A stretch of 64,000 nt of DNA, from contig OX337230.1 of the NCBI GenBank assembly GCA_946965045.2, positions 3,596,001 through 3,660,000 of the forward strand. Reading direction: 5' to 3'. Positions within the stretch are counted from its first letter, which is position 1. Each line of letters starts with the position of its first letter. The stretch is from Epithemia pelagica. Lineage: Eukaryota > Protista > Bacillariophyta. Both the position numbers and the translations under genes were made by a program. Positions 14,363 to 53,472 of this stretch are shown piece by piece. The notes below the pieces were generated by a model. That model worked only from the letters and a program-made list of their open reading frames with translations. It did not search any database and was not told where the DNA came from.

Positions 14363-16069
14363 ATGAGGGACAGTTCAGCTTTTTATTTATCCTGCATCAA
14401 TGTTGCTGCTTTGGTAGTTTTCGTTTACCACATGTCACAGATCGAGCAACGTGAACAAGAAAGAGAACAACGTGAGCAAGAACGTGAACAAGAAAGAGAT
14501 GGCGAACGCAAGCTGTTGCTGCATTATTTCCCTTTTATGAGAAAGCCCTGGGACAAGTGTAAGATAAAGGTAGGTCTCGAGGCAAACGTTCCCAAGAGAC
14601 CTCGTAACATCAAGACCAAATCGGCCAAATTCTACTTCGAGAACATGAATGTTCCAGATGGACGTTTCAAATGCCTTGTAACGGGCAAAATTGGAGTTGG
14701 TGATGAAGTGAAACTTGCCCACATCATTCCTCGACGTTCACCCGACCAATTTTTCAAATACATTTGCCTGGATCCCAATGATCGTGACCAACCGAGGAAT
14801 ACCATGTTGCTTGCGGACAAACTAGAATCGGCATTCGATAATATGCAGATTTCGTTTTGTGAAACACCGGAATCAATCGAGTGTACTGAAGCGCGAGAGC
14901 GCCAGTACCGAGTCATGGTTTGGGATCAAAACATTCTGAATAAGAGTCTGTGGCCAGGTTCACAGTACACAGTTGAAGACTTTCAAGGTCATGTGTTCTC
15001 TTTTCCACCGGGTAAGGAGCCATTTACGCGCCTACTGAGTTGGCAGGCGCAAGATTCCTATGACAATGCTGTCAAGCTACGATGGGTATCTAAAAAAGAA
15101 TGTAAAAGACCACCTAAATTTGGAACCCCGGTGAGAGAAGTTTTCACAACACCGATTGATAATTGGATTTCCTATGCCCGTGGTGAAAGTCCACAAGCTG
15201 ACGAGAAGCAGTTTCGCGGTTGTCAAGAACGGCTTTTTCAAGATGAAGTCTCAACTAGCATCGTTTCAAGTAGTAATATTCCTTCTACCCTCTCCTTGAC
15301 GGACGAAGGAGAGGGGGTGTCCACTGACGACCTGGAAACAAAAAAAACCCACGACAAGGGTGCACAACGGAAACCAGACTCGTCTGTCGAGGAACTTGGC
15401 GTGCCATCACTTGGAAAGGATGAGTGCAGTGAATCAGTGCAGACGAACCGGACAAGCTCCAAACGGTCCATTACCAATTCAAAGCGGGGCCCTCGTCGAA
15501 TGCTGCATCATCCACCGCAAGACCTGGAGAACAACAAGCGCGTTCGCAAACTCGATAACGACCAGGAACTGGGGACCAATGGCATGGAGTCAATCCAACG
15601 GCCCGTGAGACCACTGTCATCCTCTCGAGCACTGACACGTCCCAGTGCTAGTACTACTCATCCCAGTCAGAAACATCCTGCGTCCAGCAATCAATCTGTC
15701 GTATCCAAAGGCTCGGTTCGTTCGTCGTCTTCGCCTTCTTCCCAACTGCCGTTTGGCAAAGCCGTCGGCAAACGCAGCACGGTCGACGCAGGAGATGAAC
15801 CCGTCCTGGTGGCGACTGCTCCTCGTAAGAGTAGAAGACCAGCAGCGTCATTGTCATCCAACACTCGAGGACAAGAACTGGTACCGCCCGTCCACCAAGC
15901 ACAGGAGCCAGACTTCGAGGAGACCCAGCCCGACCAAGACAACAACAACAATGTCCAGTCCAAACCTCGCACGAGCCGTACCCGGCGTCGCTTGAAATTT
16001 TTCCTTTGTGTATGCTTTTGCGTGGGTGTGGCTCTGACTCTGCTCGTGTTGGTGATTTTTTGGCCATGA
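14363..16069 (+). CDS. HNH-type (CR-HNH/HNH_2-like) endonuclease with N-terminal hydrophobic anchor, coiled coil and C-terminal TM (copy 1)
   Basis: CLVTG..KLAHIIP..RNTMLLADKLESAFD (H120, N146, E155); EQREQ coiled coil; C-terminal FFLCVCFCVGVALTLLVLVIFWP. Confidence 0.8.
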   Translation: MRDSSAFYLSCINVAALVVFVYHMSQIEQREQEREQREQEREQERDGERKLLLHYFPFMRKPWDKCKIKVGLEANVPKRPRNIKTKSAKFYFENMNVPDGRFKCLVTGKIGVGDEVKLAHIIPRRSPDQFFKYICLDPNDRDQPRNTMLLADKLESAFDNMQISFCETPESIECTEARERQYRVMVWDQNILNKSLWPGSQYTVEDFQGHVFSFPPGKEPFTRLLSWQAQDSYDNAVKLRWVSKKECKRPPKFGTPVREVFTTPIDNWISYARGESPQADEKQFRGCQERLFQDEVSTSIVSSSNIPSTLSLTDEGEGVSTDDLETKKTHDKGAQRKPDSSVEELGVPSLGKDECSESVQTNRTSSKRSITNSKRGPRRMLHHPPQDLENNKRVRKLDNDQELGTNGMESIQRPVRPLSSSRALTRPSASTTHPSQKHPASSNQSVVSKGSVRSSSSPSSQLPFGKAVGKRSTVDAGDEPVLVATAPRKSRRPAASLSSNTRGQELVPPVHQAQEPDFEETQPDQDNNNNVQSKPRTSRTRRRLKFFLCVCFCVGVALTLLVLVIFWP

Positions 16070-17367
16070 CGTGGAATTCCCGACCTGACAAGCTGGACGA
16101 ACACTCTATGTGCTGGAATGAATGAATCACAATTTGGGAGAAACACAACACCTGGATAAGAAGACTGCAATTAATGTGAAAGATGAAAAATTTGGTGCGA
16201 CGATCCAGGGGGGGGGGGGGGGTTGAGACTGATTGTTTATTGCCAAGTCATGCAGCCGATGTAGTCAATAGTGTTGAATAATCTTTATGTAATGCACATC
16301 GACCTTAGTTGGGAAAAATGTACCGCAGACTGTTTATAGGGGAAGTAATCTATTGATGTCTCGGCGAGATACCCAACCGAGCAAGTTGAGGAAAAAGCGG
16401 GTGCAGTCGTCATGACTGTTGCCAAAACTGCAGGTTCGACGACTGATTCGCGCAACGACGGACGACTTGTTCAACCAACGAAGAGCAATTTTGAGTTTTC
16501 TTGTTACTCTAGCACGATATTCGCCGATAGAGAGCAAGGCGACAAAGAGCGCCATTGTCGGACGATGGAATGGTATATTCCGTTGTGTGATCCTTCTGGC
16601 TCCTAGAGAAAGTGCAAGTTACCTACGGCGTATGGCTTTGCGGTTGTCGAAATTGCACTGTGGCTCCATCCAAACCAATAGCATTTTGCAACTCCAGAGA
16701 GCTTGCACCAAACACGGTATAGTGATTCGTTTGCTTTGTTGTAACATGGTACACTCTTCACAAGAACTACCTTGCTGGGGACTACCTGGTAGTAGACTCG
16801 TTGTTCCAGAATGGAAATGTGTCCATGTGCAACTCATAATGCTTCAACACCGTGTGGTTGTGGTTTGGATCGTCCTTGTCGTCGTCGTTGTAGTAGTAGT
16901 AGTAGTGGGAACAAAAGAGTGGTACATCCAAGGATGCCACCATGGTATCGGACTGCCACCGGACCCGGTCTCCTCGTAGACCACGTTTTCAGTCGGACTC
17001 ATTGTTCAGTCACGAATTCACGCCACTCATTCTTCGGGTCATTCGTCACAACCTTTGTACGCGGTTGATACGACAGGTGAAGCAACCTTGATTTTGCACA
17101 ATGGCAACCGAGCCGCTTCCTGAATATGGCAGAACAATCCCCAACAATTCCATCCTGAGTGGAATGTTGGTGTCGGTCTCACAGTCCCCCCAACACAGTG
17201 TCAGGAAGACTTGAGCCCGGTTGGACGAAAGAGGTGCGCAACAGTACTCTAGCAGAGCGGTTTTTTCTTGTCGAATGGGAACCAAAACGGTTTCCAAAAA
17301 TCAGACGTGTGCAATGAATCGTTTGGCATCTTCGCGTTCTTAATCTTGTCACACAAAAAGAGTAATC

Positions 17368-19074
17368 ATGAGGGACAGTTCAGCTTTTTATTTATCCTGC
17401 ATCAATGTTGCTGCTTTGGTAGTTTTCGTTTACCACATGTCACAGATCGAGCAACGTGAACAAGAAAGAGAACAACGTGAGCAAGAACGTGAACAAGAAA
17501 GAGATGGCGAACGCAAGCTGTTGCTGCATTATTTCCCTTTTATGAGAAAGCCCTGGGACAAGTGTAAGATAAAGGTAGGTCTCGAGGCAAACGTTCCCAA
17601 GAGACCTCGTAACATCAAGACCAAATCGGCCAAATTCTACTTCGAGAACATGAATGTTCCAGATGGACGTTTCAAATGCCTTGTAACGGGCAAAATTGGA
17701 GTTGGTGATGAAGTGAAACTTGCCCACATCATTCCTCGACGTTCACCCGACCAATTTTTCAAATACATTTGCCTGGATCCCAATGATCGTGACCAACCGA
17801 GGAATACCATGTTGCTTGCGGACAAACTAGAATCGGCATTCGATAATATGCAGATTTCGTTTTGTGAAACACCGGAATCAATCGAGTGTACTGAAGCGCG
17901 AGAGCGCCAGTACCGAGTCATGGTTTGGGATCAAAACATTCTGAATAAGAGTCTGTGGCCAGGTTCACAGTACACAGTTGAAGACTTTCAAGGTCATGTG
18001 TTCTCTTTTCCACCGGGTAAGGAGCCATTTACGCGCCTACTGAGTTGGCAGGCGCAAGATTCCTATGACAATGCTGTCAAGCTACGATGGGTATCTAAAA
18101 AAGAATGTAAAAGACCACCTAAATTTGGAACCCCGGTGAGAGAAGTTTTCACAACACCGATTGATAATTGGATTTCCTATGCCCGTGGTGAAAGTCCACA
18201 AGCTGACGAGAAGCAGTTTCGCGGTTGTCAAGAACGGCTTTTTCAAGATGAAGTCTCAACTAGCATCGTTTCAAGTAGTAATATTCCTTCTACCCTCTCC
18301 TTGACGGACGAAGGAGAGGGGGTGTCCACTGACGACCTGGAAACAAAAAAAACCCACGACAAGGGTGCACAACGGAAACCAGACTCGTCTGTCGAGGAAC
18401 TTGGCGTGCCATCACTTGGAAAGGATGAGTGCAGTGAATCAGTGCAGACGAACCGGACAAGCTCCAAACGGTCCATTACCAATTCAAAGCGGGGCCCTCG
18501 TCGAATGCTGCATCATCCACCGCAAGACCTGGAGAACAACAAGCGCGTTCGCAAACTCGATAACGACCAGGAACTGGGGACCAATGGCATGGAGTCAATC
18601 CAACGGCCCGTGAGACCACTGTCATCCTCTCGAGCACTGACACGTCCCAGTGCTAGTACTACTCATCCCAGTCAGAAACATCCTGCGTCCAGCAATCAAT
18701 CTGTCGTATCCAAAGGCTCGGTTCGTTCGTCGTCTTCGCCTTCTTCCCAACTGCCGTTTGGCAAAGCCGTCGGCAAACGCAGCACGGTCGACGCAGGAGA
18801 TGAACCCGTCCTGGTGGCGACTGCTCCTCGTAAGAGTAGAAGACCAGCAGCGTCATTGTCATCCAACACTCGAGGACAAGAACTGGTACCGCCCGTCCAC
18901 CAAGCACAGGAGCCAGACTTCGAGGAGACCCAGCCCGACCAAGACAACAACAACAATGTCCAGTCCAAACCTCGCACGAGCCGTACCCGGCGTCGCTTGA
19001 AATTTTTCCTTTGTGTATGCTTTTGCGTGGGTGTGGCTCTGACTCTGCTCGTGTTGGTGATTTTTTGGCCATGA
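17368..19074 (+). CDS. HNH-type endonuclease, copy 2
   Basis: Protein identical to copy 1. Confidence 0.8.
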   Translation: MRDSSAFYLSCINVAALVVFVYHMSQIEQREQEREQREQEREQERDGERKLLLHYFPFMRKPWDKCKIKVGLEANVPKRPRNIKTKSAKFYFENMNVPDGRFKCLVTGKIGVGDEVKLAHIIPRRSPDQFFKYICLDPNDRDQPRNTMLLADKLESAFDNMQISFCETPESIECTEARERQYRVMVWDQNILNKSLWPGSQYTVEDFQGHVFSFPPGKEPFTRLLSWQAQDSYDNAVKLRWVSKKECKRPPKFGTPVREVFTTPIDNWISYARGESPQADEKQFRGCQERLFQDEVSTSIVSSSNIPSTLSLTDEGEGVSTDDLETKKTHDKGAQRKPDSSVEELGVPSLGKDECSESVQTNRTSSKRSITNSKRGPRRMLHHPPQDLENNKRVRKLDNDQELGTNGMESIQRPVRPLSSSRALTRPSASTTHPSQKHPASSNQSVVSKGSVRSSSSPSSQLPFGKAVGKRSTVDAGDEPVLVATAPRKSRRPAASLSSNTRGQELVPPVHQAQEPDFEETQPDQDNNNNVQSKPRTSRTRRRLKFFLCVCFCVGVALTLLVLVIFWP

Positions 19075-20375
19075 CGTGGAATTCCCGACCTGACAAGCTG
19101 GACGAACACTCTATGTGCTGGAATGAATGAATCACAATTTGGGAGAAACACAACACCTGGATAAGAAGACTGCAATTAATGTGAAAGATGAAAAATTTGG
19201 TGCGACGATCCAGGGGGGGGGGGGGGGGGGTTGAGACTGATTGTTTATTGCCAAGTCATGCAGCCGATGTAGTCAATAGTGTTGAATAATCTTTATGTAA
19301 TGCACATCGACCTTAGTTGGGAAAAATGTACCGCAGACTGTTTATAGGGGAAGTAATCTATTGATGTCTCGGCGAGATACCCAACCGAGCAAGTTGAGGA
19401 AAAAGCGGGTGCAGTCGTCATGACTGTTGCCAAAACTGCAGGTTCGACGACTGATTCGCGCAACGACGGACGACTTGTTCAACCAACGAAGAGCAATTTT
19501 GAGTTTTCTTGTTACTCTAGCACGATATTCGCCGATAGAGAGCAAGGCGACAAAGAGCGCCATTGTCGGACGATGGAATGGTATATTCCGTTGTGTGATC
19601 CTTCTGGCTCCTAGAGAAAGTGCAAGTTACCTACGGCGTATGGCTTTGCGGTTGTCGAAATTGCACTGTGGCTCCATCCAAACCAATAGCATTTTGCAAC
19701 TCCAGAGAGCTTGCACCAAACACGGTATAGTGATTCGTTTGCTTTGTTGTAACATGGTACACTCTTCACAAGAACTACCTTGCTGGGGACTACCTGGTAG
19801 TAGACTCGTTGTTCCAGAATGGAAATGTGTCCATGTGCAACTCATAATGCTTCAACACCGTGTGGTTGTGGTTTGGATCGTCCTTGTCGTCGTCGTTGTA
19901 GTAGTAGTAGTAGTGGGAACAAAAGAGTGGTACATCCAAGGATGCCACCATGGTATCGGACTGCCACCGGACCCGGTCTCCTCGTAGACCACGTTTTCAG
20001 TCGGACTCATTGTTCAGTCACGAATTCACGCCACTCATTCTTCGGGTCATTCGTCACAACCTTTGTACGCGGTTGATACGACAGGTGAAGCAACCTTGAT
20101 TTTGCACAATGGCAACCGAGCCGCTTCCTGAATATGGCAGAACAATCCCCAACAATTCCATCCTGAGTGGAATGTTGGTGTCGGTCTCACAGTCCCCCCA
20201 ACACAGTGTCAGGAAGACTTGAGCCCGGTTGGACGAAAGAGGTGCGCAACAGTACTCTAGCAGAGCGGTTTTTTCTTGTCGAATGGGAACCAAAACGGTT
20301 TCCAAAAATCAGACGTGTGCAATGAATCGTTTGGCATCTTCGCGTTCTTAATCTTGTCACACAAAAAGAGTAATC

Positions 20376-22082
20376 ATGAGGGACAGTTCAGCTTTTTATT
20401 TATCCTGCATCAATGTTGCTGCTTTGGTAGTTTTCGTTTACCACATGTCACAGATCGAGCAACGTGAACAAGAAAGAGAACAACGTGAGCAAGAACGTGA
20501 ACAAGAAAGAGATGGCGAACGCAAGCTGTTGCTGCATTATTTCCCTTTTATGAGAAAGCCCTGGGACAAGTGTAAGATAAAGGTAGGTCTCGAGGCAAAC
20601 GTTCCCAAGAGACCTCGTAACATCAAGACCAAATCGGCCAAATTCTACTTCGAGAACATGAATGTTCCAGATGGACGTTTCAAATGCCTTGTAACGGGCA
20701 AAATTGGAGTTGGTGATGAAGTGAAACTTGCCCACATCATTCCTCGACGTTCACCCGACCAATTTTTCAAATACATTTGCCTGGATCCCAATGATCGTGA
20801 CCAACCGAGGAATACCATGTTGCTTGCGGACAAACTAGAATCGGCATTCGATAATATGCAGATTTCGTTTTGTGAAACACCGGAATCAATCGAGTGTACT
20901 GAAGCGCGAGAGCGCCAGTACCGAGTCATGGTTTGGGATCAAAACATTCTGAATAAGAGTCTGTGGCCAGGTTCACAGTACACAGTTGAAGACTTTCAAG
21001 GTCATGTGTTCTCTTTTCCACCGGGTAAGGAGCCATTTACGCGCCTACTGAGTTGGCAGGCGCAAGATTCCTATGACAATGCTGTCAAGCTACGATGGGT
21101 ATCTAAAAAAGAATGTAAAAGACCACCTAAATTTGGAACCCCGGTGAGAGAAGTTTTCACAACACCGATTGATAATTGGATTTCCTATGCCCGTGGTGAA
21201 AGTCCACAAGCTGACGAGAAGCAGTTTCGCGGTTGTCAAGAACGGCTTTTTCAAGATGAAGTCTCAACTAGCATCGTTTCAAGTAGTAATATTCCTTCTA
21301 CCCTCTCCTTGACGGACGAAGGAGAGGGGGTGTCCACTGACGACCTGGAAACAAAAAAAACCCACGACAAGGGTGCACAACGGAAACCAGACTCGTCTGT
21401 CGAGGAACTTGGCGTGCCATCACTTGGAAAGGATGAGTGCAGTGAATCAGTGCAGACGAACCGGACAAGCTCCAAACGGTCCATTACCAATTCAAAGCGG
21501 GGCCCTCGTCGAATGCTGCATCATCCACCGCAAGACCTGGAGAACAACAAGCGCGTTCGCAAACTCGATAACGACCAGGAACTGGGGACCAATGGCATGG
21601 AGTCAATCCAACGGCCCGTGAGACCACTGTCATCCTCTCGAGCACTGACACGTCCCAGTGCTAGTACTACTCATCCCAGTCAGAAACATCCTGCGTCCAG
21701 CAATCAATCTGTCGTATCCAAAGGCTCGGTTCGTTCGTCGTCTTCGCCTTCTTCCCAACTGCCGTTTGGCAAAGCCGTCGGCAAACGCAGCACGGTCGAC
21801 GCAGGAGATGAACCCGTCCTGGTGGCGACTGCTCCTCGTAAGAGTAGAAGACCAGCAGCGTCATTGTCATCCAACACTCGAGGACAAGAACTGGTACCGC
21901 CCGTCCACCAAGCACAGGAGCCAGACTTCGAGGAGACCCAGCCCGACCAAGACAACAACAACAATGTCCAGTCCAAACCTCGCACGAGCCGTACCCGGCG
22001 TCGCTTGAAATTTTTCCTTTGTGTATGCTTTTGCGTGGGTGTGGCTCTGACTCTGCTCGTGTTGGTGATTTTTTGGCCATGA
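20376..22082 (+). CDS. HNH-type endonuclease, copy 3
   Basis: Protein identical to copy 1. Confidence 0.8.
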   Translation: MRDSSAFYLSCINVAALVVFVYHMSQIEQREQEREQREQEREQERDGERKLLLHYFPFMRKPWDKCKIKVGLEANVPKRPRNIKTKSAKFYFENMNVPDGRFKCLVTGKIGVGDEVKLAHIIPRRSPDQFFKYICLDPNDRDQPRNTMLLADKLESAFDNMQISFCETPESIECTEARERQYRVMVWDQNILNKSLWPGSQYTVEDFQGHVFSFPPGKEPFTRLLSWQAQDSYDNAVKLRWVSKKECKRPPKFGTPVREVFTTPIDNWISYARGESPQADEKQFRGCQERLFQDEVSTSIVSSSNIPSTLSLTDEGEGVSTDDLETKKTHDKGAQRKPDSSVEELGVPSLGKDECSESVQTNRTSSKRSITNSKRGPRRMLHHPPQDLENNKRVRKLDNDQELGTNGMESIQRPVRPLSSSRALTRPSASTTHPSQKHPASSNQSVVSKGSVRSSSSPSSQLPFGKAVGKRSTVDAGDEPVLVATAPRKSRRPAASLSSNTRGQELVPPVHQAQEPDFEETQPDQDNNNNVQSKPRTSRTRRRLKFFLCVCFCVGVALTLLVLVIFWP

Positions 22083-23381
22083 CGTGGAATTCCCGACCTG
22101 ACAAGCTGGACGAACACTCTATGTGCTGGAATGAATGAATCACAATTTGGGAGAAACACAACACCTGGATAAGAAGACTGCAATTAATGTGAAAGATGAA
22201 AAATTTGGTGCGACGATCCAGGGGGGGGGGGGGGGGTTGAGACTGATTGTTTATTGCCAAGTCATGCAGCCGATGTAGTCAATAGTGTTGAATAATCTTT
22301 ATGTAATGCACATCGACCTTAGTTGGGAAAAATGTACCGCAGACTGTTTATAGGGGAAGTAATCTATTGATGTCTCGGCGAGATACCCAACCGAGCAAGT
22401 TGAGGAAAAAGCGGGTGCAGTCATCATGACTGTTGCCAAAACTGCAGGTTCGACGACTGATTCGCGCAACGACGGACGACTTGTTCAACCAACGAAGAGC
22501 AATTTTGAGTTTTCTTGTTACTCTAGCACGATATTCGCCGATAGAGAGCAAGGCGACAAAGAGCGCCATTGTCGGACGATGGAATGGTATATTCCGTTGT
22601 GTGATCCTTCTGGCTCCTAGAGAAAGTGCAAGTTACCTACGGCGTATGGCTTTGCGGTTGTCGAAATTGCACTGTGGCTCCATCCAAACCAATAGCATTT
22701 TGCAACTCCAGAGAGCTTGCACCAAACACGGTATAGTGATTCGTTTGCTTTGTTGTAACATGGTACACTCTTCACAAGAACTACCTTGCTGGGGACTACC
22801 TGGTAGTAGACTCGTTGTTCCAGAATGGAAATGTGTCCATGTGCAACTCATAATGCTTCAACACCGTGTGGTTGTGGTTTGGATCGTCCTTGTCGTCGTC
22901 GTTGTAGTAGTAGTAGTAGTGGGAACAAAAGAGTGGTACATCCAAGGATGCCACCATGGTATCGGACTGCCACCGGACCCGGTCTCCTCGTAGACCACGT
23001 TTTCAGTCGGACTCATTGTTCAGTCACGAATTCACGCCACTCATTCTTCGGGTCATTCGTCACAACCTTTGTACGCGGTTGATACGACAGGTGAAGCAAC
23101 CTTGATTTTGCACAATGGCAACCGAGCCGCTTCCTGAATATGGCAGAACAATCCCCAACAATTCCATCCTGAGTGGAATGTTGGTGTCGGTCTCACAGTC
23201 CCCCCAACACAGTGTCAGGAAGACTTGAGCCCGGTTGGACGAAAGAGGTGCGCAACAGTACTCTAGCAGAGCGGTTTTTTCTTGTCGAATGGGAACCAAA
23301 ACGGTTTCCAAAAATCAGACGTGTGCAATGAATCGTTTGGCATCTTCGCGTTCTTAATCTTGTCACACAAAAAGAGTAATC

Positions 23382-25088
23382 ATGAGGGACAGTTCAGCTT
23401 TTTATTTATCCTGCATCAATGTTGCTGCTTTGGTAGTTTTCGTTTACCACATGTCACAGATCGAGCAACGTGAACAAGAAAGAGAACAACGTGAGCAAGA
23501 ACGTGAACAAGAAAGAGATGGCGAACGCAAGCTGTTGCTGCATTATTTCCCTTTTATGAGAAAGCCCTGGGACAAGTGTAAGATAAAGGTAGGTCTCGAG
23601 GCAAACGTTCCCAAGAGACCTCGTAACATCAAGACCAAATCGGCCAAATTCTACTTCGAGAACATGAATGTTCCAGATGGACGTTTCAAATGCCTTGTAA
23701 CGGGCAAAATTGGAGTTGGTGATGAAGTGAAACTTGCCCACATCATTCCTCGACGTTCACCCGACCAATTTTTCAAATACATTTGCCTGGATCCCAATGA
23801 TCGTGACCAACCGAGGAATACCATGTTGCTTGCGGACAAACTAGAATTGGCATTCGATAATATGCAGATTTCGTTTTGTGAAACACCGGAATCAATCGAG
23901 TGTACTGAAGCGCGAGAGCGCCAGTACCGAGTCATGGTTTGGGATCAAAACATTCTGAATAAGAGTCTGTGGCCAGGTTCACAGTACACAGTTGAAGACT
24001 TTCAAGGTCATGTGTTCTCTTTTCCACCGGGTAAGGAGCCATTTACGCGCCTACTGAGTTGGCAGGCGCAAGATTCCTATGACAATGCTGTCAAGCTACG
24101 ATGGGTATCTAAAAAAGAATGTAAAAGACCACCTAAATTTGGAACCCCGGTGAGAGAAGTTTTCACAACACCGATTGATAATTGGATTTCCTATGCCCGT
24201 GGTGAAAGTCCACAAGCTGACGAGAAGCAGTTTCGCGGTTGTCAAGAACGGCTTTTTCAAGATGAAGTCTCAACTAGCATCGTTTCAAGTAGTAATATTC
24301 CTTCTACCCTCTCCTTGACGGACGAAGGAGAGGGGGTGTCCACTGACGACCTGGAAACAAAAAAAAACCACGACAAGGGTGCACAACGGAAACCAGACTC
24401 GTCTGTCGAGGAACTTGGCGTGCCATCACTTGGAAAGGATGAGTGCAGTGAATCAGTGCAGACGAACCGGACAAGCTCCAAACGGTCCATTACCAATTCA
24501 AAGCGGGGCCCTCGTCGAATGCTGCATCATCCACCGCAAGACCTGGAGAACAACAAGCGCGTTCGCAAACTCGATAACGACCAGGAACTGGGGACCAATG
24601 GCATGGAGTCAATCCAACGGCCCGTGAGACCACTGTCATCCTCTCGAGCACTGACACGTCCCAGTGCTAGTACTACTCATCCCAGTCAGAAACATCCTGC
24701 GTCCAGCAATCAATCTGTCGTATCCAAAGGCTCGGTTCGTTCGTCGTCTTCGCCTTCTTCCCAACTGCCGTTTGGCAAAGCCGTCGGCAAACGCAGCACG
24801 GTCGACGCAGGAGATGAACCCGTCCTGGTGGCGACTGCTCCTCGTAAGAGTAGAAGACCAGCAGCGTCATTGTCATCCAACACTCGAGGACAAGAACTGG
24901 TACCGCCCGTCCACCAAGCACAGGAGCCAGACTTCGAGGAGACCCAGCCCGACCAAGACAACAACAACAATGTCCAGTCCAAACCTCGCACGAGCCGTAC
25001 CCGGCGTCGCTTGAAATTTTTCCTTTGTGTATGCTTTTGCGTGGGTGTGGCTCTGACTCTGCTCGTGTTGGTGATTTTTTGGCCATGA
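23382..25088 (+). CDS. HNH-type endonuclease, copy 4 (S156L, T329N)
   Basis: Two nonsynonymous SNPs relative to copy 1. Confidence 0.8.
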   Translation: MRDSSAFYLSCINVAALVVFVYHMSQIEQREQEREQREQEREQERDGERKLLLHYFPFMRKPWDKCKIKVGLEANVPKRPRNIKTKSAKFYFENMNVPDGRFKCLVTGKIGVGDEVKLAHIIPRRSPDQFFKYICLDPNDRDQPRNTMLLADKLELAFDNMQISFCETPESIECTEARERQYRVMVWDQNILNKSLWPGSQYTVEDFQGHVFSFPPGKEPFTRLLSWQAQDSYDNAVKLRWVSKKECKRPPKFGTPVREVFTTPIDNWISYARGESPQADEKQFRGCQERLFQDEVSTSIVSSSNIPSTLSLTDEGEGVSTDDLETKKNHDKGAQRKPDSSVEELGVPSLGKDECSESVQTNRTSSKRSITNSKRGPRRMLHHPPQDLENNKRVRKLDNDQELGTNGMESIQRPVRPLSSSRALTRPSASTTHPSQKHPASSNQSVVSKGSVRSSSSPSSQLPFGKAVGKRSTVDAGDEPVLVATAPRKSRRPAASLSSNTRGQELVPPVHQAQEPDFEETQPDQDNNNNVQSKPRTSRTRRRLKFFLCVCFCVGVALTLLVLVIFWP

Positions 25089-44305: not shown

Positions 44306-45484
44306 TTATCTCACCGGGGTGCCAAATGGAAGTGGTCTTTCACAATATTGTGATGATATCCATCCTTCCATGACAGCATTGTCATAGGACTCTTGCGCAT
44401 GCCAACTCAGTAGGCGCGTAAATGGCTCCTTACCCGGTGGAAAAGAGAACACATGATCTTCATACTCAGCAACTGTGTGCTGTGAACCTGTCCACAAAGG
44501 CTTATTCAGAATGTTTCGATCCCAAACCGTGACTCGGAACTGGCGCTCTCGCACTTGAGGACAATTGATTGATTCACGCGTTTCACAAAACGAAATCTGC
44601 ATTTGATTGAATGCAGATTCAAGCGTTTCCGCAAGCAACATGGTATTTCGGGGTTGATCACGATCATTGGGATCCAGGCCAACGTATGTGAACATTGGGT
44701 CGAATGAATCTCGAGGAAGGATGTGAGCAAGTTTCACTTCATCACCAATCCCAATATGGCCCGTTACAAGGCATTTTGTACGGAAATTCCTACCGAAAAC
44801 CGGAATGTCCATGTTCTCAAAGTAGAACTTGGCTGATTTGGCCTTGATGTCAGGTGGTCTCTCGGGAACGCTTGCATCACGATTGATCAAAAACGCGAGA
44901 TTCTGCAGCATCAGTTTGTATTCGCCATGTCCTTCTCGCTCACGCTCACGCCCACGCTCATGCAGCTTCTTCACGCTTTTCTGCTCAATCTGCTCGAGCT
45001 TGCAATCACGTTGTTCTCTTTCTTGTTCACGTTGCAGCAACAGCTTGCGTTCGCCATCTCTTTCTTGTTCACGTTGTTCTCTTTCTTGCTCACGTTGCAG
45101 CAACAGCTTGCGTTCGCCATCTTTTTCTTGTTCACGTTGTTCTCTTTCTTGTTCACGTTGTTCAATTTTCTTTATCTTTTGCTCAATCTGCTCGAGCTTG
45201 CAATCACGTTGTTCTCTTTCTTGCTCACGTTGCAGCAACAGCTTGCGTTCGCCATCTCTTTCTTGTTCACGTTGTTCTCTTTCTTGCTCACGTTGCAGCA
45301 ACAGCTTGCGTTCGCCATCTCTTTCTTGTTCACGTTGTTCTCTTTCTTGCTCACGTTGTTCAATTTTCTCAATCTTTTGCTCAATCTGCTTGAGCTTGTA
45401 AACGAGAACTACACAAGCAGCAACGTTGATGCCGGAAGCAACAGCAGTGATGCAGGATAAATAAAAAGCTGAACTGTCCCTCAT
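44306..45484 (-). CDS. Inverted paralog of the array HNH gene: expanded coiled coil, C-terminally truncated (possibly a pseudogene)
   Basis: Same N-terminus (MRDSSAFYLSCI) and HNH core (CLVTG, KLAHILP, RNTMLLAETLESAFN). A GAA>TAA stop follows FGTPVR, and ~0.96 kb encoding the C-terminal TM region is missing. Confidence 0.8.
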   Translation of the reverse strand: MRDSSAFYLSCITAVASGINVAACVVLVYKLKQIEQKIEKIEQREQEREQREQERDGERKLLLQREQEREQREQERDGERKLLLQREQEREQRDCKLEQIEQKIKKIEQREQEREQREQEKDGERKLLLQREQEREQREQERDGERKLLLQREQEREQRDCKLEQIEQKSVKKLHERGREREREGHGEYKLMLQNLAFLINRDASVPERPPDIKAKSAKFYFENMDIPVFGRNFRTKCLVTGHIGIGDEVKLAHILPRDSFDPMFTYVGLDPNDRDQPRNTMLLAETLESAFNQMQISFCETRESINCPQVRERQFRVTVWDRNILNKPLWTGSQHTVAEYEDHVFSFPPGKEPFTRLLSWHAQESYDNAVMEGWISSQYCERPLPFGTPVR

Positions 45485-46182
45485 GTTTCCTCTTGTTGTG
45501 TGACAAGATTATGCGCCGTTTGAAGAAAGCAAACATGCCAAACGATTCATTGCACACGTCTGATTGTTGGAGACTGTTTTGGTTCCCATTCGACAAGAAA
45601 AAACCGCTCTGCTAGTACTGTTGCGCACCTCTTTCGTCCAACCGGGCTTGAGTCTTCCTGACATTGTGTTGGGGGGGGGGGGGGGGGACTGTGAGACCTA
45701 CACCAACATTTCATTCAGGATGGAATTGTTGGGGATTGTTCCGCCATATTCAGGAAGCGGATCAGGAAGCGGATGATCAATACTTGTAGAGCAGGAACAT
45801 CTCGGTTGCCTTTGTGCAAAATCAAGTTTGCTTCACCTCTCTCGTATCAACCGTACACAGGTTGTGACGAATGACGAATGTCAATGTGAATTCGTGACTG
45901 AACAATGAGTCCGCCGCCAACGACGACTGTCCAAAAATTCATTCAAGTTTTGTCGAGAAATTGAAAACGAAAAGTGCAAAAATGGATCATTTGTCGAGAG
46001 TAATAGTGTCCAAAACGAAAACTGCAAAAATGGATCACTTTTTCACTCTTTTTTATTGTCGTCAGTGCCATCAATCGTCGTTGACACCTTTTGATGAGGG
46101 GAATCCAAAAGATTCCAGTCTATACGAAAGGCAAGAAGAACGAAAGAGCGAGAGCGAGAGAGAGAAGGTAAAGAAACAGACC

Positions 46183-48225
46183 ATGAACCATTGGTGGCTG
46201 TCTGCCTGCTTCCGAGGTACCGTATTTTGGTTTGTCCATATAATAGCTGGTACAGCTTTACTTGTCACTTTCGATTTTGATGTCGTTGGTGCCTTGACCG
46301 TACCACAACCACCACAACGACGGAAAGCCGCAGCAGGAGGACGAACCCCTTCGCAACCAGATCGTCTTGACCAGCGTGATAGCAACGACGACAGCAATGA
46401 TCTAGGAGAGTGGACCATTCAACCGACGCAACCATCGGAATGTCGACTCATTCTGTGTCAAATCACTGATGTTTACACCTTGGAACACTTGGCCTCGTTC
46501 AAAACCATGATTCAAGATACCAAAACCAAGGCTGGGCCCGATACTGCCGTGCGTTCACTCTTGACGGGTGACTTTTTGTCTCCCTATTTATTGTCGTCCG
46601 TCGATCGAGGCGCTGGTATGATGAATGCCTTGGCCAAACTTCCCTTGGACATTTTGACCTGGGGCAATCATGAAGCCGACCTTGATCATCGAACAGTGGT
46701 GCGCCATGTCCGTAATTTTCCTGGCAAATGGCTCAATTCCAACATGCTGAATCATGAAGCCATGGATGCGCAACAGGAATATGATATCATTCAACTCTGT
46801 TCCGCCGATGGCACGCATCGTCGCAAAGTAGGATTGTGTGCCGTGCTCAGCAACGATCCAGCTCTCTATGCTCATTTCAAACCACCCGGTGCTTTTGGGG
46901 GTGCCACCGTGACGGATCCCTGGGAGGCCTTGACCAAATACCAGCACTTGTTGGAACAGGAGCAGGGATGTGACTTGGTGATTCCCCTCCAACATTTATA
47001 CGTCCCCGACGATCACAAGACGTGTCGAGACTTTGATTTCCCCGTCGTCTTGTCCGGTCACGATCATCATCGGGTCGATGAGGTGGTGGAAGGAACACGA
47101 CTCCTCAAACCCGGCATGAATGCCGTGTATGCAACGCTCCTTGAAATTTCGTGGTTGAACCAAGAATCACCGCCTCGGATTCGAGCGCGGTTTGTCCATT
47201 GCGACGATTGGGAACCGGATCCGGTATTGGCGGAGGAGAATGAACGCGCCTACACTGCCTTGCTTCCTCTTCGCAACACGGAATTGGCTCGCGTTCCATC
47301 CTACTTTGAACCCTTATCGTCCGGAAATGCCCGAGGCGAAGTGTGTACCATGGGCAAATACCTTTGTTCCTTGATTCGATCGGCCTTGAATGTCAAGCGT
47401 CGACAACGCCAACACAACATTGATGCCGTCTTGATCATGGGTGGCAATATTCGAGGCAATGTTCACGAATACCCTCGGGGATCCTACTTTTCCTTGGAAG
47501 CTCTGGAAGCCGAAGTGAAATCGGATGAAGTGATTGGCGTTGTCCCCATGCCCGGATGGCTTTTGGATCAAGGCATTCGTGCCACACATGCCGGAGATCC
47601 CATTCCGGGATGGATGCAATACGATATCGGTGTCCAGCAAGATGCTGCCAAACACGTGACCCATGTCGCCGGAAAACCATTGGATCCCAATCGCATGTAC
47701 CGCGTCGCCACCAAAATTAGTGATTTGACCAATGGACAATGTGCTCCCTGGACCGACTATTACACACAACACGCAGACTTGTTACCACCCAAGGGAGCCT
47801 ACATCAATGTCCAATCGGAACTCATGTCCTATTTTGCCCGCAACTTATGGCGTAAAATTTGGGACAAGACGACCGAATTGATTGGCAGCGACACTACGGA
47901 CGACGACGACGACGAAGAATGCTACGTGGATGGGTGTGATGCCCCGGCCAGGTTGCACGTCTTGGATACAGCGGGAGACGGAGTGGTAACAGTGGACGAT
48001 TTGCAAACAGCCCTCAAGAACTTGTTGGGGTATTCCGTCGATGCCCGTGAACCCACCTTGGCCCAATTTGTCCATGCCTTTGCCGACACGACCGGAGATG
48101 GGACAGTGACCGTGGCCGATATTGAAAGTTTTAGCGATGAAATTCAAGACTTGTACCAACAAGACGAATGGCGTCTGGCCTTTCCTCGATCCTCCAGTCC
48201 ACCACCGGATGTCGTGCGGTCCTAA
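46183..48225 (+). CDS. 5'-nucleotidase-family metallophosphoesterase with EF-hands (paralog B)
   Basis: Same motifs as 11154-13100. ATG at 46183 precedes a hydrophobic leader. Confidence 0.88.
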   Translation: MNHWWLSACFRGTVFWFVHIIAGTALLVTFDFDVVGALTVPQPPQRRKAAAGGRTPSQPDRLDQRDSNDDSNDLGEWTIQPTQPSECRLILCQITDVYTLEHLASFKTMIQDTKTKAGPDTAVRSLLTGDFLSPYLLSSVDRGAGMMNALAKLPLDILTWGNHEADLDHRTVVRHVRNFPGKWLNSNMLNHEAMDAQQEYDIIQLCSADGTHRRKVGLCAVLSNDPALYAHFKPPGAFGGATVTDPWEALTKYQHLLEQEQGCDLVIPLQHLYVPDDHKTCRDFDFPVVLSGHDHHRVDEVVEGTRLLKPGMNAVYATLLEISWLNQESPPRIRARFVHCDDWEPDPVLAEENERAYTALLPLRNTELARVPSYFEPLSSGNARGEVCTMGKYLCSLIRSALNVKRRQRQHNIDAVLIMGGNIRGNVHEYPRGSYFSLEALEAEVKSDEVIGVVPMPGWLLDQGIRATHAGDPIPGWMQYDIGVQQDAAKHVTHVAGKPLDPNRMYRVATKISDLTNGQCAPWTDYYTQHADLLPPKGAYINVQSELMSYFARNLWRKIWDKTTELIGSDTTDDDDDEECYVDGCDAPARLHVLDTAGDGVVTVDDLQTALKNLLGYSVDAREPTLAQFVHAFADTTGDGTVTVADIESFSDEIQDLYQQDEWRLAFPRSSSPPPDVVRS

Positions 48226-48544: not shown

Positions 48545-49203
48545 GGCAAGACGACAAAAAGAGTGTCTAGGTTCCTCCTCATAGCCGTACTCATGGCTTG
48601 GTTCGAGTCGCCTACGATGAAAATGTCAAATGCATTGATACCATTATCTTGATTGGTATCGGTACCGCCAGGACGCTTTTTGGGCGGTCATTCGGCGTCG
48701 TCCTTGAAGTTTGGAGAAGTGGTCGTCCAAGTCAGTCAACAAGGATCGTCGTCTGATCTAACCATTGATGGCGTTGTAGGATTGGAACCGCAATACCGAC
48801 GTCTTCCTTCCAATTCTCAACCCTGGAGTGGATTGGATTTGACCTCGATTCCGACCGTCATGTGGGGCAAACCTGTCAAGTTACGGTGAATGCGGGTGGC
48901 AAATATGGCCATGAACAATCCTCGCCCGACTACCGCGTCTTGTATCAAATTCAATTGGATGCGGACCGCAAAAAACACTTTGGACATTGCGATTTGACCG
49001 ACAAGGGTTGTGCTGGAGTCTGTGCCTTGTCCGATCGGAACGAATTCACCAAACAAGCCATGACAGCCTCGATGCAAGAATTGGCCACGGCCGTGCATGT
49101 GTCCAATCCCAGTTCGTACTTTACCGAGGACAAACTCACTCTGCCGTCGTCGCTGAGTCTCAAAATGTTTCTCAACAACCATGAGGTTGGTGCCTACGAA
49201 TAA
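48545..49203 (+). pseudogene. Degenerate copy of the chlorophyllase-like hydrolase (closest to 38071-39066)
   Basis: VPPHSRTHGLVRVAYDE, GGHSASS and YRVLYQIQL fall in three frames; it carries an internal deletion, a stop and a frameshift. Confidence 0.85.
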
Positions 49204-49753
49204 CAAGACCAAACTATCGAGTAACTATATCGAATCAATAGGACTTGGAAGAACGATTGGTGTTCTTTCCACAGGCTCTGCGATACTTCTTATAGACCAG
49301 ATTGACCTTTCATACCGACTCCAGTACATAGTTAGTCCTAAGGGCTTTTTCTAGAGTATATTATAAGCTTTTATTCTGCGATGCTTTATATTCTCGCAGA
49401 TGGGGAGGTCTCTTTCGAGGAGAGTGGTTGGAACAATTGATGGACCAGTTCCTCCTCCCAAACACCCTTCTTTCGGATTTGTCCGGTTCCTCTTCCTTCC
49501 TCATAGCCGGTACAGTTTCTCCGATCGTACACGGGTTTTCGTAAAATCGAATTCAGTGTCGACTTGGGCGGTCTCCTCAAGCTGTGGCGAACGACAAACA
49601 TCAATTTCAAATTCAGCTTTTTCTTCACTTGTCTGTCGTCCCATACCCCTGGAGGACAATAGTGCTTGGGTCAGAGAATGCAGAAATACATATGTATAGC
49701 AAAAGGAACATGGTTTTGGAGGATCCGCACAAACGTGGGGCACACCACAACAC

Positions 49754-50404
49754 TCAAACTCTTGGAGCAGCAGAATCCATTTGTGGTTCGAGTGGCGCCA
49801 CTGATGGCTCATAGTCACAGGTCCAGTTTTCGTCGTCATTCCTGCCGTAGACCCAACCATACTTTGTGACCGGCTTTTCCATGGTTCCCTGTTTCGCCAC
49901 CTCCACGAAACGCACATAGTAAAGGTCCTGATAGCAACCACTGTAGCGGTCAATATCCAACTCCACCTCGTAGCCATGCGTCAAAAAGTCGTCCTGGAAC
50001 GACGCAATAATTTGTTGGAGATTGTGGTTCCACCAGGCAATGATCCCGAGCACTAGAATGAGAAACCCCAGCGGCACGCCCACAAGAAGTCCCAACAAGG
50101 TCCAACCGCTTTCCACCGTGGCACCTGGATTGATCATGGCCCATGCACCGAGGCCAACAAACACAATTACCACGAGAACGCCAATGGACCTTGTTTTGAT
50201 TCGGCAGGCACGGCGCAAACGAGTCGCAAACGGTGTCCATATCTCGTCCGGGATGGCCGCCAGGGCCGTTGGTTTGCCATGCTTGAGAAACAAATAGCCC
50301 GACCCCCAAGTCTGTTGCGCTTTGGAAGAATCCAAAGCTATTCGAACTTCACCGTCGGGCAAAAGAACTTGACGGTACAGCTTCCATGTCCTGTCGTTTG
50401 TCAT
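49754..50404 (-). CDS. Uncharacterised two-TM membrane protein
   Basis: Open frame from the ATG at 50404; two hydrophobic helices; a decayed duplicate at 34035-34502 supports a real gene. Confidence 0.65.
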   Translation of the reverse strand: MTNDRTWKLYRQVLLPDGEVRIALDSSKAQQTWGSGYLFLKHGKPTALAAIPDEIWTPFATRLRRACRIKTRSIGVLVVIVFVGLGAWAMINPGATVESGWTLLGLLVGVPLGFLILVLGIIAWWNHNLQQIIASFQDDFLTHGYEVELDIDRYSGCYQDLYYVRFVEVAKQGTMEKPVTKYGWVYGRNDDENWTCDYEPSVAPLEPQMDSAAPRV

Positions 50405-50524
50405 GGGCGCGGAAGGGGTCAATCATCATGTGATGTACTCCTATATATTATATTGCGTCCGTCAAAGCAGCAGTGGCAGTGCCCCCTTGAGCCGTACTCT
50501 CTAGCTAGAGGAGCTATATAGCTA

Positions 50525-51117: not shown

Positions 51118-52235
51118 ATGAAATCTACCGCGGATCTTGATGCACCAGGCGTAGCCGACTTCGAGGATGTGTGGACTGCATTGTGCATTTCCGAGAAAAG
51201 CCTCACAACGGCAGAGTCCCTTTTTGGCAACGACAGGCAATGGTTCATTCGCGCGTCCTACATCAAGCTCTACGACGACATTGTGGCTGACAAAAATAGA
51301 AGACATGCTCAAATTGTCAATGGTACCGCGGGCGTTGGCAAGTCGTCCTTTTTGCTGTATGCGTTGGCTCGATGCCGATGCGCAGGCAAGTCCGTTCTGT
51401 TGCATTATCATCCTACCGACAAGGAAACAGCAACTGCAGCCTTTTTCCCACCAATGGCACGCCTTTGATCATGAGTACATGTGACTCAGGTTACTTGGCA
51501 ACGTTCCGAAAGTGGTACAAACAGATTGGGAACGAATAATCCCTATTCTTAGTGGATGGCGTTGTGTCCTTTACGAAGGATGACTTTCAAGGTGTTATAT
51601 ACGTGGCAGCCAGATCTCCCAGTTGTAGCATTGGCTTTATGGAAAAAGATCAGAATCGATGCGATCGCTGGCTTGAATTTTGGACACACTCGGAGCTACT
51701 CGCCTACGCGACAACTGTTGGTATTCCAAACGCAGCCGAGATTATCTATGACAATTGGTGTCATCTAGGAGGTGTCTCCAGGTATGCCTTTACTGCCAAC
51801 GCTGCTAAGGAGGCAGTCATGAACGCTATTTCAATTGTGGGCGCAACTTCACTCCTCAATGTTGTCATGACTGGCCTTATGGGACAAAACGAACAGCAGA
51901 AGGTTGTCGACAGACTTATTCACCGACATGCACCTGACGACAAGATTGGAGTCTATTGCACTACCTTCACGTTTGCGTCGGAGTTTGTCGCAACCATAGT
52001 TTCCATGGCTATTTGTCTTGAGACAAAGATTACAACCGATGAGCTCTTGCGTTGCTTTGAAGGGGTTGGTGCTGCGGGTGACTTGCGTGGAGTCTTGTTT
52101 GGGGCATACGCGGCACGAAGACTGGCAGCTGGGGGGAACTTTCCGATAACTACTCTGACTACCTGGGGCAGCTCGGACGATCCATTTGTCAAAGTCTACC
52201 ATCGCGTCAGCATTGAGCCAGCCATCATGACGTGA
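51118..52235 (+). pseudogene. Disrupted Crinkler/RHS-type P-loop NTPase gene, truncated near the start of the nuclease domain
   Basis: WFIRASY, Walker A VNGTAGVGKSSFLLY, LGGVSRY, FTFASEFV and RGVLFG; frameshift near 51449 and in-frame TAA at 51537-51539. Confidence 0.75.
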
Positions 52236-53472
52236 CACGCCATAGACGCCGGGTATCGTTGTGAGTTGATTGTAGGAGGTAAAAAATCACTTCCTTTACT
52301 GCAACCGTATGATCCCGAGCATCAAAAGACCCCAGTGTAGTCGGGTCCGCAACGCCAGGAATAGCTGTCGTCCATGTCAATTGGAATATGCCATCTGGAT
52401 TTGCTAGCTCCTCCATGTGAAGAGAAACTCGCCGATTTATTTCGCAGTCAATATAGAGGGGCTGGAAGTATCGGTAATTATCCTCGACATGAATGGATAT
52501 ATTGTTCGGGAGGAAAGGCCGCCAAGTTTGCTCTTGTTTCGCTTGGCGCAACCAAAGATGAACCAAAAGACGATCCACATCTTCTCCGTTCACAAAATGG
52601 ACACCATCCATAAATCTTATTGGCTCAAGGCAAACTTGCGGAATTATATCCAGATTCACCCCATTGCCACGTCCAGTACCATCGAATTGCTCACGAGCAT
52701 CATTGGAAAGCGCAAGACGATTAAATTTCTGTTTGTCGAGCCACTCATACACTCCTATGCACTTAGCTTTGGGAAAGATGTGCGCACCTTGCGCGTTGCA
52801 TCTACCAAATGCTGCGTCAATCTCAATGCGTTGGAACTTGAACACGGTGTCATTCTTCTTGTAAGACGATGGGGCAGAGGACATGTCGACCGAGGAGAAT
52901 TCGACATTACAAACAGGGGAGTCGTTCGGCGATTCGCCCTCGGGTTCGTTTGGTCGATACTCACTCTCGTACACAAGGGCCGGATCATCAATAGGATCGA
53001 CAGTGCGCCGTTCCAGATGAGGACTTGCGTAACAACGAATGCCACTATTAGAGTTGACATAGCCATCGACAGCTCTTTGGAATTGCTCAGCGGAGGATAA
53101 ATCGCGAAACACCACGGACAGGGAAAGCAGCCTTTTTTCTGGATCGCTGGGATGAGTACTTGTAGCAAAAGCAGTATCGACAGTTGTGCCACTGGGATAG
53201 TACCCATTTAGTGATGCAAGCTGCATCATTTTGAATCGAACTCCAGCAGTAGCTCGATTACGCTCTATCGTTCCATAGACATTATGCCACACATGCTGTT
53301 GTTGTTGTTGTTGTTGTTGCTGCTGCTGCTGCTGCTGCTTGTATTGAAGGAATTGATCACGGAGACCTCGGCGGTCGTTGAAGGCAAGTTCGTTAAATTC
53401 TTTCTCTGCGACCGGGTAATTTATCAGCCATGATTTGTATTCATCTTCTATTAGTTCCCAAGCAGTCGTCAT
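52225..53472 (-). CDS. Crinkler-like protein: short helical header, poly-Q and CRN-type HNH-like C-terminal domain
   Basis: MTTAWELIEDEYKSWL header and Q-run. FQRIE..AQGAHIFP..YEWLD..NRLALSNDAREQFDG resembles oomycete CRN C-termini as recalled (QRIE..SCHL..NRLALSR..H..FDG). Confidence 0.65.
   Translation of the reverse strand: MTTAWELIEDEYKSWLINYPVAEKEFNELAFNDRRGLRDQFLQYKQQQQQQQQQQQQQQHVWHNVYGTIERNRATAGVRFKMMQLASLNGYYPSGTTVDTAFATSTHPSDPEKRLLSLSVVFRDLSSAEQFQRAVDGYVNSNSGIRCYASPHLERRTVDPIDDPALVYESEYRPNEPEGESPNDSPVCNVEFSSVDMSSAPSSYKKNDTVFKFQRIEIDAAFGRCNAQGAHIFPKAKCIGVYEWLDKQKFNRLALSNDAREQFDGTGRGNGVNLDIIPQVCLEPIRFMDGVHFVNGEDVDRLLVHLWLRQAKQEQTWRPFLPNNISIHVEDNYRYFQPLYIDCEINRRVSLHMEELANPDGIFQLTWTTAIPGVADPTTLGSFDARDHTVAVKEVIFYLLQSTHNDTRRLWRVTS

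Follow-up and report, generated by a model that had tools for sequence, protein, structure and literature searches.

Proteins of the Crinkler/RHS (CR) type have become known chiefly from oomycete and fungal pathogens, where they serve as effectors, and from trypanosomes, as the RHS proteins. In CR proteins, a header that varies is followed by an enzymatic C-terminus, most commonly a nucleoside triphosphatase (NTPase) joined to a restriction endonuclease (REase) (PMC5289972, summarising Zhang et al. 2016). They are present in free-living eukaryotes as well as in pathogens, derive from prokaryotic transposon-linked genes, and are located in transposon-rich regions, sometimes head-to-tail (PMC5289972). 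Literature searches, in which the taxon list of Zhang et al. 2016 was left unchecked, found no paper on Crinkler-type genes of diatoms. Here we describe a locus of 39 kb in the diatom Epithemia pelagica, contained in a stretch of 64,000 nucleotides that is called the window below (assembly GCA_946965045.2, contig OX337230.1, positions 3,596,001 to 3,660,000 of the forward strand). The locus harbours a tandem array of five genes of the Pfam family HNH_2, three P-loop NTPase loci (N1, N2, and N3), a diverged HNH_2 paralog (HNH-B), and a gene encoding a protein with a polyglutamine (poly-Q) stretch. Taken as a whole, the locus gives the impression of an unstable region with gene turnover, and not of a new kind of system.

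An earlier note, made from the sequence alone, had described ten nuclease-type or nuclease-associated loci in these 39 kb and had interpreted them as a birth-and-death effector or anti-parasite locus. The listing of open reading frames (ORFs) and the self-comparison recovered all ten at or near the places where the note had put them, including the five HNH copies, the truncated HNH gene, and the three P-loop NTPase loci, each with a Walker A motif. The mixture of intact, frameshifted, and truncated genes was also found, N2 being intact, N1 broken in frame, and N3 both broken and truncated. The ten loci correspond to about five independent arrivals, since the array copies go back to a single, very recent amplification and the array gene (HNH-A) and HNH-B are paralogs. 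We favour the reading, as probable though well short of certain, that nuclease genes of a selfish or conflict type accumulate and turn over passively in this unstable region rich in transposons. Three or four unrelated, lineage-specific families of nuclease genes would have landed here, their members being copied, broken, and lost.

N2 possesses the clearest relationship to the CR family. Its predicted layout comprises a STAND/AAA+-like NTPase, a helical and winged-helix region, and a C-terminal PD-QxK nuclease, with Walker A at amino acids (aa) 106-113, Walker B at D250-E251, and E533, D617, Q637, and K639 as nuclease residues. Diatom homologs of N2 number 44, not counting its own gene call (P0003), and their identity is 29-52%; among them are proteins of Seminavis robusta ('expressed unknown protein'), Nitzschia inconspicua, and Attheya, and MMETSP transcripts. 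Walker A, Walker B, E533, D617 (in a GPD motif), Q637, and K639 are invariant in an alignment of 28 sequences. A phmmer-type search of 5.8 billion sequences revealed a match to the Crinkler-header protein P0046 of Entomortierella parvispora (E 1.4e-5), and hhalign of the diatom alignment (A1) against this protein gave Prob 99.9 and E 2.3e-35 over 658 columns. The PF20147 header of P0046 covers aa 7-113 and lies entirely outside the columns aligned to N2. P0046, a CR protein with NTPase and REase, is similar to N2 over the whole post-header module and in predicted shape; both possess the Walker A motif GTSG.GKTR, the Walker B motif DEAQ, and GRPRW-like, GPDL.FF, and Q.K motifs. Judged by these alignments, the NTPase-REase module of a Crinkler-header protein and N2 are truly homologous.

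In the AlphaFold (AF2) model of N2 (pLDDT 86.5, pTM 0.88), a helix bears E533, and consecutive strands bear D617 and Q637-x-K639, which is the usual PD-(D/E)xK arrangement of such residues. Structure searches matched residues ~50-510 to the archaeal ATPase PAB2304 (2qen, Z 14.6), and the NTPase part to the NB-ARC modules of NLR proteins (Z 11-13) and to TnsC and MuB (Z ~10), the range including PAB2304 being 14.6-9.8. The NTPase part filled the hit lists of these searches, and the nuclease fold itself was unmatched there. PAB2304/ATPase_2, STAND NTPases, TnsC, and MuB resemble N2 at the fold level only, with 9-15% identity; N2 differs from them in lacking sensor repeats and in its predicted fused PD-QxK nuclease domain. 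Mucoromycota Crinkler-header proteins and unannotated Basidiomycota proteins matched N2 in shape with a TM-score of 0.56, and their language-model scores were 0.92-0.99. A weak shape match to AAA_14+DUF4143 proteins was also detected. Profile searches of alignment A1 and of a further alignment (A2) against PDB sequences found nothing, and scans of the Pfam, PADLOC, and NCBIfam libraries gave weak P-loop hits at most for N2 and for the poly-Q protein. The NTPase, with its helical and winged-helix region, probably gates the predicted C-terminal PD-QxK endonuclease, which would act on DNA.

The header is the point at which N2 departs from CR proteins. Only ~30 residues precede its module, with no evident signal peptide, and N2 possesses neither a ubiquitin-like (Ubl) nor an LxLFLAK header; its host is a photosynthetic diatom and no pathogen. 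A search for the PF20147 header covered aa 1-100 of N2, the N-terminus of the poly-Q protein, and the HNH proteins, and gave no match. N2 is thus grouped with the CR NTPase-REase proteins as one without a header, because the module fits and the header does not, and with neither header nor signal peptide its action would take place inside the diatom cell. The earlier note had assumed effectors with non-canonical headers; the proteins of the window showed neither a header nor a signal peptide nor an LxLFLAK motif, so that the word effector stays an analogy. The homolog from Nitzschia inconspicua (P0022) shows, at aa 116-155 of its N-terminal extension, a partial match to PF20147 that is below threshold (19.5 bits against 24.6, E 0.0017), and some diatom homologs of N2 may therefore keep a diverged header. 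The Nitzschia gene is situated among housekeeping genes, with no HNH gene nearby.

Two alleles of N2 could be compared, one from the window and one from contig ctg1205l of an independent ENA assembly. They differ by nine nonsynonymous and two synonymous changes, which corresponds to a ratio of nonsynonymous to synonymous substitution rates (dN/dS) of ~1.25. If omega were 0.2, a nonsynonymous excess of this size would have a probability of 0.0035. Two deletions are also present in the ctg1205l allele, one of 3 nt and one of 1 nt, and the latter breaks the frame. Selection on the N2 alleles looks relaxed, with no constraint visible.

The other two NTPase loci are damaged. N1 consists of two overlapping ORFs in different frames, and its break is located within the 32448-32584 overlap. 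Contigs from each of the four runs show this break, with no gaps over 31333-33900. An intron as the cause was considered and rejected, RNA-like and DNA contigs being collinear with the genome across 31904-33900. Run X4 is RNA-like, with patchy coverage and a GT..AG joint, and its depth was 164 over N1 against 21 over the neighbouring patatin-like gene. The joint removes 86 nt at 31821-31906, with unspliced contigs alongside; as read from the sequence, its splicing would shift the ATG at 31751 out of frame. Given the frame break in all runs together with the depth and the joint in X4, N1 looks like a transcribed, damaged gene. N3 possesses no nuclease part, and its 3′ end abuts the convergent poly-Q gene. 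An intron was likewise rejected as the cause of its frame change, since any plausible donor site lies beyond the stop at 51466-51468.

Relatives of N1 and N3 were searched with the ORF pieces of these broken genes taken separately and never joined. Scans of the same libraries found no family match for either, and weak P-loop hits at most. Alignment tied neither N1 nor N3 to the CR family, and hhalign of the N2 family against their pieces was not significant. N1 and N3 align to each other solely in the surroundings of Walker A (E 8e-4), and the metagenome scan found no relatives of the N1 piece N1b. The closest language-model neighbours of N1 are hypothetical proteins of Oomycota and Basidiomycota (0.96) and a trypanosome RHSP (0.89), and its nuclease motif E...D...QTK, read by eye, is plausible. 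The label Crinkler/RHS-like, which had been given to the island, is firm for N2; N1 and N3 are Crinkler/RHS-like only in their language-model features and motifs. The three genes appear to be independent arrivals, mutually not detectably related, and the intact N2 would be restricted to this haplotype. Birth-and-death of a single family does not apply, because no relationship among the three NTPase loci was detected; in the wider sense of the term, gene birth and loss are visible in the young array, in differences of copy number, and in the frame breaks of N1, N3, and one N2 allele.

Proteins encoded by the five array genes match Pfam HNH_2 (PF13391) with 35.4 bits at a cut-off of 21. They start with a hydrophobic segment (aa 3-25) followed by a QREQERE coiled coil. 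The HNH_2 core spans aa 104-165, with the residues C104, H120, N146, E155, and D159; beyond it there is a conserved extension to ~aa 265, then a long tail rich in serine and proline, and finally a second hydrophobic segment (aa 542-568) with RTRRRLK directly before it. The array protein is predicted to be a His-Me-finger nuclease, namely an H-N-E variant of HNH_2, and may be held at a membrane by its N-terminal hydrophobic segment and coiled coil and by its tail-anchor-like C-terminus. In run X4 the depth was zero at 28000-28196, a stretch that takes in the end of the fifth HNH ORF (its last 94 nt) and sequence just downstream.

An exhaustive phmmer search with the core (aa 52-285) against 1.84 billion representatives revealed 310 relatives at E <= 1e-3, 79 of them at E <= 1e-10. 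The relatives that were looked up belong to metagenome and metatranscriptome assemblies, with one MMETSP transcript among them. Of thirty aligned relatives, 28 match Pfam HNH_2, and a Crinkler header is absent from all thirty. The signature of the family reads C..TG / AH..P / RN / IE.AFD, with a conserved C-terminal extension of ~100 residues (IWD...PF.R.LS.HA). At the position of the last His, which is E155 in the array protein, Glu is found in 21 of the 30 relatives and Lys in seven. The N-termini are highly variable, several of them consisting of a hydrophobic segment and then a coiled coil; the C-terminal hydrophobic anchor is nearly exclusive to the array protein. Placeable relatives are single genes, none of them arrayed or next to NTPases, and one adjoins a Copia element. 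Similar to other members of HNH_2, the array protein and HNH-B score above the gathering score and keep the core Cys, His, and Asn; the array family differs in the Glu at the last His and in the conserved extension, and the array copies in the hydrophobic segments at both ends. A link of the five-copy family to the HNH domain of CR proteins is not supported; the family is an ordinary subfamily within Pfam HNH_2.

Pairwise differences among the five array proteins amount to 0-2 residues, and 8 of the 3008 alignment columns vary among the array units (identity >=99.7%). Every unit contains a fragment from the 3′ end of a patatin-like phospholipase gene, and repeats of the same origin form the edges of the array. 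An alignment was made of both array edges and two unit junctions, the right edge being the genuine patatin 3′ end. The unit junctions match the right-edge sequence as far as GTGCAACTCATAATGCT and the left-edge sequence beyond it. As the junctions are chimeras of both patatin fragments that switch there, the crossover is placed within this identity of 17 bp. The alignment shows how the array was born, namely by a non-allelic crossover in the 17-bp identity between diverged, patatin-derived direct repeats. In the ancestral state, the HNH_2 gene was located between two such repeats, which stem from the 3′ end of the patatin gene next to it. The crossover duplicated a segment of 3.0 kb, and later unequal crossovers between whole units produced the five copies found here and the other copy numbers described below.

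Near-identical gene copies that encode a putative nuclease and are arranged head-to-tail in a repeat-rich region are also known from the Crinkler (CRN) arrays of Phytophthora infestans (PMC5289972). Those arrays are helitron-associated (PMC5289972), in contrast to the unequal crossover between patatin-derived repeats in Epithemia pelagica, and they consist of CRN genes, whereas the gene amplified here is HNH_2, with no proven Crinkler link.

An independent assembly and read-derived depth both bear on the copy number. Contig ctg1205l has the same left flank with 99.8% identity and three array units. Contig ctg1286l, from the independent ENA assembly as well, represents the other haplotype; it carries at least four units, its end lies inside the array, and its flank is 95-99% identical. 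Copy number thus varies between haplotypes or assemblies, with three, at least four, and five units on the different contigs. Among the Logan contigs of three DNA runs, the depth over the array was 811 and 627 in two runs, against 139 and 116 for adjoining single-copy sequence; the resulting ratio of 5.4-5.9 suggests an array of the order of five to six copies, although depth is not copy number and marks the array only as clearly multi-copy. An assembly artefact, in which repeat over-expansion would have made the island look larger than it is, could account for the merely three copies next to the nearly identical flank of ctg1205l. The depth ratio in both runs, the four or more copies on the second contig, and the private differences between copies (the 8 variable columns, 0-2 aa) make such an artefact hardly credible.

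HNH-B matches HNH_2 with 31.8 bits (cut-off 21, E 1.3e-7), in agreement with the truncated HNH gene of the earlier note, and tblastn and phmmer give 57-70% aa identity to the array protein over the shared domain. About 970 bp, corresponding to the serine- and proline-rich tail and the C-terminal hydrophobic segment, are missing, and the homologous 3′ flank follows directly. The coiled coil of HNH-B (44982-45398) is enlarged by nested tandem repeats, with a 198-bp unit present 2.1 times at 97% identity; this unit is composed of 63-bp and 21-bp units encoding QREQEREQ...GERKLLL. Between HNH-A and HNH-B, dN is 0.22, dS 0.25-0.27, and dN/dS 0.82-0.91, against a dN/dS of 0.22 at a dS of 0.86 for the phosphoesterase paralogs beside them, and constraint on the HNH paralogs looks relaxed. 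The two pairs belong to the same segmental duplication and are unequal in dS (0.86 for the phosphoesterase pair, 0.27 for the HNH pair). Since its dS is far below that of the phosphoesterase pair, the HNH pair was duplicated later or homogenised by gene conversion.

The poly-Q gene that had been noted as a CRN-type HNH is present, and its HNH assignment comes down to a match at the level of motifs. The 444-aa ORF encodes a helical N-terminus with Q17, a ferredoxin-like domain at ~aa 87-192, an HNH_2-like motif (GAHIFPKAKC...FNRLALS...AREQFD), and a beta-rich C-terminal domain. Seven relatives with 42-54% identity have the motif GAHIFPKAKC...FNRLALS..GHQQFDGTG in common. At the position of the last His, the copy in the window has R, and 7/8 relatives have H. 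Pfam HNH_2 matched one of the nine family members (E 0.053), and whole-profile hhalign of the family against HNH_2 was not significant; trimmed local hhalign gave P 0.0039, with AHI.P, N.L, and H..FD in register. In the AF2 model the HNH-like stretch (aa 212-305) is below pLDDT 50 and not confidently folded, and the fold search found no match for this low-confidence stretch; for aa 87-192 it returned generic ferredoxin-like and ACT-like matches. An HNH-like domain in the poly-Q protein is plausible from these motifs, and not established.

The coordinates of the features are collected in Table 1.

Table 1. Features of the nuclease locus and of its surroundings in the window.
Feature	Position	Strand	Evidence or remark
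Tandem array, 5.07 units of 3005-3008 bp	13734-28980	+	Each unit with HNH_2 gene, promoter region, and patatin 3′-end fragment
HNH_2 gene, copy 1 of 5, 568 aa	14363-16069	+	ORF, Pfam HNH_2
HNH_2 gene, copy 2 of 5, 568 aa	17368-19074	+	ORF, Pfam HNH_2
HNH_2 gene, copy 3 of 5, 568 aa	20376-22082	+	ORF, Pfam HNH_2
HNH_2 gene, copy 4 of 5, 568 aa	23382-25088	+	ORF, Pfam HNH_2
HNH_2 gene, copy 5 of 5, 568 aa	26387-28093	+	ORF, Pfam HNH_2
Diverged patatin 3′-end fragment, left edge of array	13783-13944	-	tblastn, 61% aa identity to patatin aa 425-476
Chimeric patatin fragments inside units	16782-16949, 19790-19957, 22796-22963, 25801-25968		tblastn and junction alignment
Patatin-like phospholipase gene	28804-30237	-	PF01734, E 4.6e-17; 3′ end is right edge of array
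N1, P-loop NTPase with putative REase	31751-33365	+	Walker A GSPGIGKS, then E...D...QTK
N2, intact NTPase-nuclease ORF, 769 aa	41591-43900	+	Walker A GTSGAGKT
HNH-B, diverged inverted HNH_2 paralog, 392 aa	44306-45484	-	HNH_2 match
N3, remnant P-loop NTPase	51118-52235	+	Walker A GTAGVGKS, frame change
N3, first piece	51118-51468	+	ORF with Walker A GTAGVGKS
N3, continuation in other frame	51552-52235	+	ORF
Poly-Q protein with HNH_2-like motif	52225-53472	-	Motif-level match
RVT_1 retroelement, 8.1 kb, ORFs of 720 and 1920 aa	2642-10772	+	Left of island
Metallophosphoesterase/5′-nucleotidase/EF-hand gene	11154-13100	+	Paralog at 45961-48225 marks older duplication
Element of ~1.2 kb with 38-nt inverted repeats (89% complementary)	30438-31655	.	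Just upstream of N1
Copia-type long terminal repeat (LTR) element, RVT_2 ORF of 1545 aa	54781-60878	+	LTRs 99.1% identical; right of island

The locus is part of a region in which other genes were also copied. Self-comparison revealed an older, rearranged segmental duplication in which the phosphoesterase, HNH, and patatin genes, a gene for a transmembrane protein, and a hydrolase-like gene were copied together. Because non-nuclease neighbours were duplicated with the HNH gene, the region is more likely to be generally unstable than to be a dedicated nuclease island. The small transmembrane paralogs at 34069-34839 and 49501-50422, which belong to this rearranged duplication, have NHNLQQIIASF...GYEVELDIDRY in common and show no family match. 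Genes for secreted-looking, alpha/beta-hydrolase-like proteins with a GHSAS motif are located at 38071-39066 (-) and 39553-40812 (+) as divergent paralogs, with a third fragment at 48678-49334; the GHSAS-motif protein has no Pfam match.

Transposons are found on both sides of the locus and within it. The RVT_1 retroelement is absent on ctg1286l, and a second copy with 99.95% identity is located just upstream of N2 on ctg1205l, so this element was active very recently. The 1.2-kb element upstream of N1 contains a nested pair of inverted repeats at 30896/31337, and its read-derived depth of 1500-8000, against ~137 for single-copy sequence, makes it look like a high-copy element of the miniature inverted-repeat transposable element (MITE) kind. 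An ORF at 61171-62256 unites a SWIM zinc finger with a RING-H2 finger. No telomere repeats were found within the 64-kb window, so that a subtelomeric position has no support there. No synteny of the locus was found in Nitzschia or in the assemblies with HNH relatives. The proteins of the island are not housekeeping proteins, and the locus is not a syntenic one under purifying selection, dN/dS being near 1.

The earlier note had seen in this locus an effector or anti-parasite island, which would be a functional, immune-like unit whose nucleases are deployed jointly against viruses, oomycetes, or competitors and whose amplification is driven by an arms race. We consider this unlikely, although several of the observations above agree with it: N2 is of Crinkler type, the N-termini of the HNH family are modular and variable, dN/dS is near 1, the array is young and polymorphic with 5/5 copies intact, and N1 appears to be transcribed. 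Known Crinkler genes are likewise located in transposon-rich regions and in head-to-tail arrays (PMC5289972), and the setting of CRN genes, transposon-rich and duplicated with pseudogenes present, is similar to the one described here. The locus nevertheless falls short of an integrated effector or defence island with proteins working together or secreted, because header and secretion signal (signal peptide, LxLFLAK) were not found, breaks were found in two of the three NTPase loci and, on the other haplotype, in N2 too, the families are unrelated, the amplified HNH gene has no proven Crinkler link, and ordinary, non-nuclease neighbours were duplicated too. The last His of its family is lost in the poly-Q protein, the 3′ end of the HNH gene has no depth in the RNA-like run, and no conserved co-occurrence was found elsewhere. 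A further reading has a diatom repertoire of Crinkler-type conflict genes that would act intracellularly in an immune- or addiction-like manner, a locus that would be a hotspot of recruitment, a membrane-tethered H-N-E nuclease amplified for dosage through unequal crossover under current pressure from pathogens or selfish elements, and a copy number that would differ among haplotypes as a standing adaptive polymorphism; this we regard as decidedly improbable. As another explanation, the NTPase-nuclease genes would be cargo or machinery of mobile elements, with a TnsC/MuB-like ATPase and a TnsA-like nuclease, that inserted themselves, and the cluster would be a transposon graveyard. The resemblance of the N2 NTPase to the transposition ATPases TnsC and MuB (Z ~10) would fit such an origin, as would the thought that the Crinkler NTPase-REase pair derives from prokaryotic transposons (PMC5289972) and the length of the N1 interval (3.6 kb between the patatin 5′ end and the transmembrane gene), which exceeds its counterpart in the paralogous block (330 bp) by 3.3 kb. 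However, no terminal repeats or target-site duplications bracketing N1 or N2 were found, and the inverted repeats near N1 bound the separate 1.2-kb element; N2 is single-copy in the genome, its next relative being 51% identical and from another source, and the Nitzschia homolog of N2 stands among housekeeping genes. Such an origin is rather improbable.

Passive accumulation and turnover, the explanation that we prefer, also has several points to its disadvantage. The five identical intact HNH copies could reflect selection for dosage, and a dN/dS near 1 can also be obtained from diversifying selection on conflict genes. The depth over N1 in the RNA-like run is above that over patatin, so that 'decaying' may be too strong a word for this gene, and the 1-nt deletion of the ctg1205l allele of N2 lies in an A-run and is possibly an assembly error. 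The single assembly that could be searched has members of the N2, HNH, and poly-Q families at this locus only; their co-location within 39 kb may therefore exceed what transposon context or chance would give, a point in favour of the island reading.

N2 adds to the CR family a well-supported member that lacks a header and comes from a free-living, photosynthetic diatom; its homologs are expressed across diatoms and are labelled in databases only as 'unknown proteins'. It extends the view of CR modules as general eukaryotic conflict or selfish genes, and not as pathogen weapons. The HNH array provides a clean case in nature of the birth of a tandem array, in which the crossover can be read to 17 bp and the copy number is still variable. 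Both features provide handles for the study of diatom genome plasticity and of possible defence.

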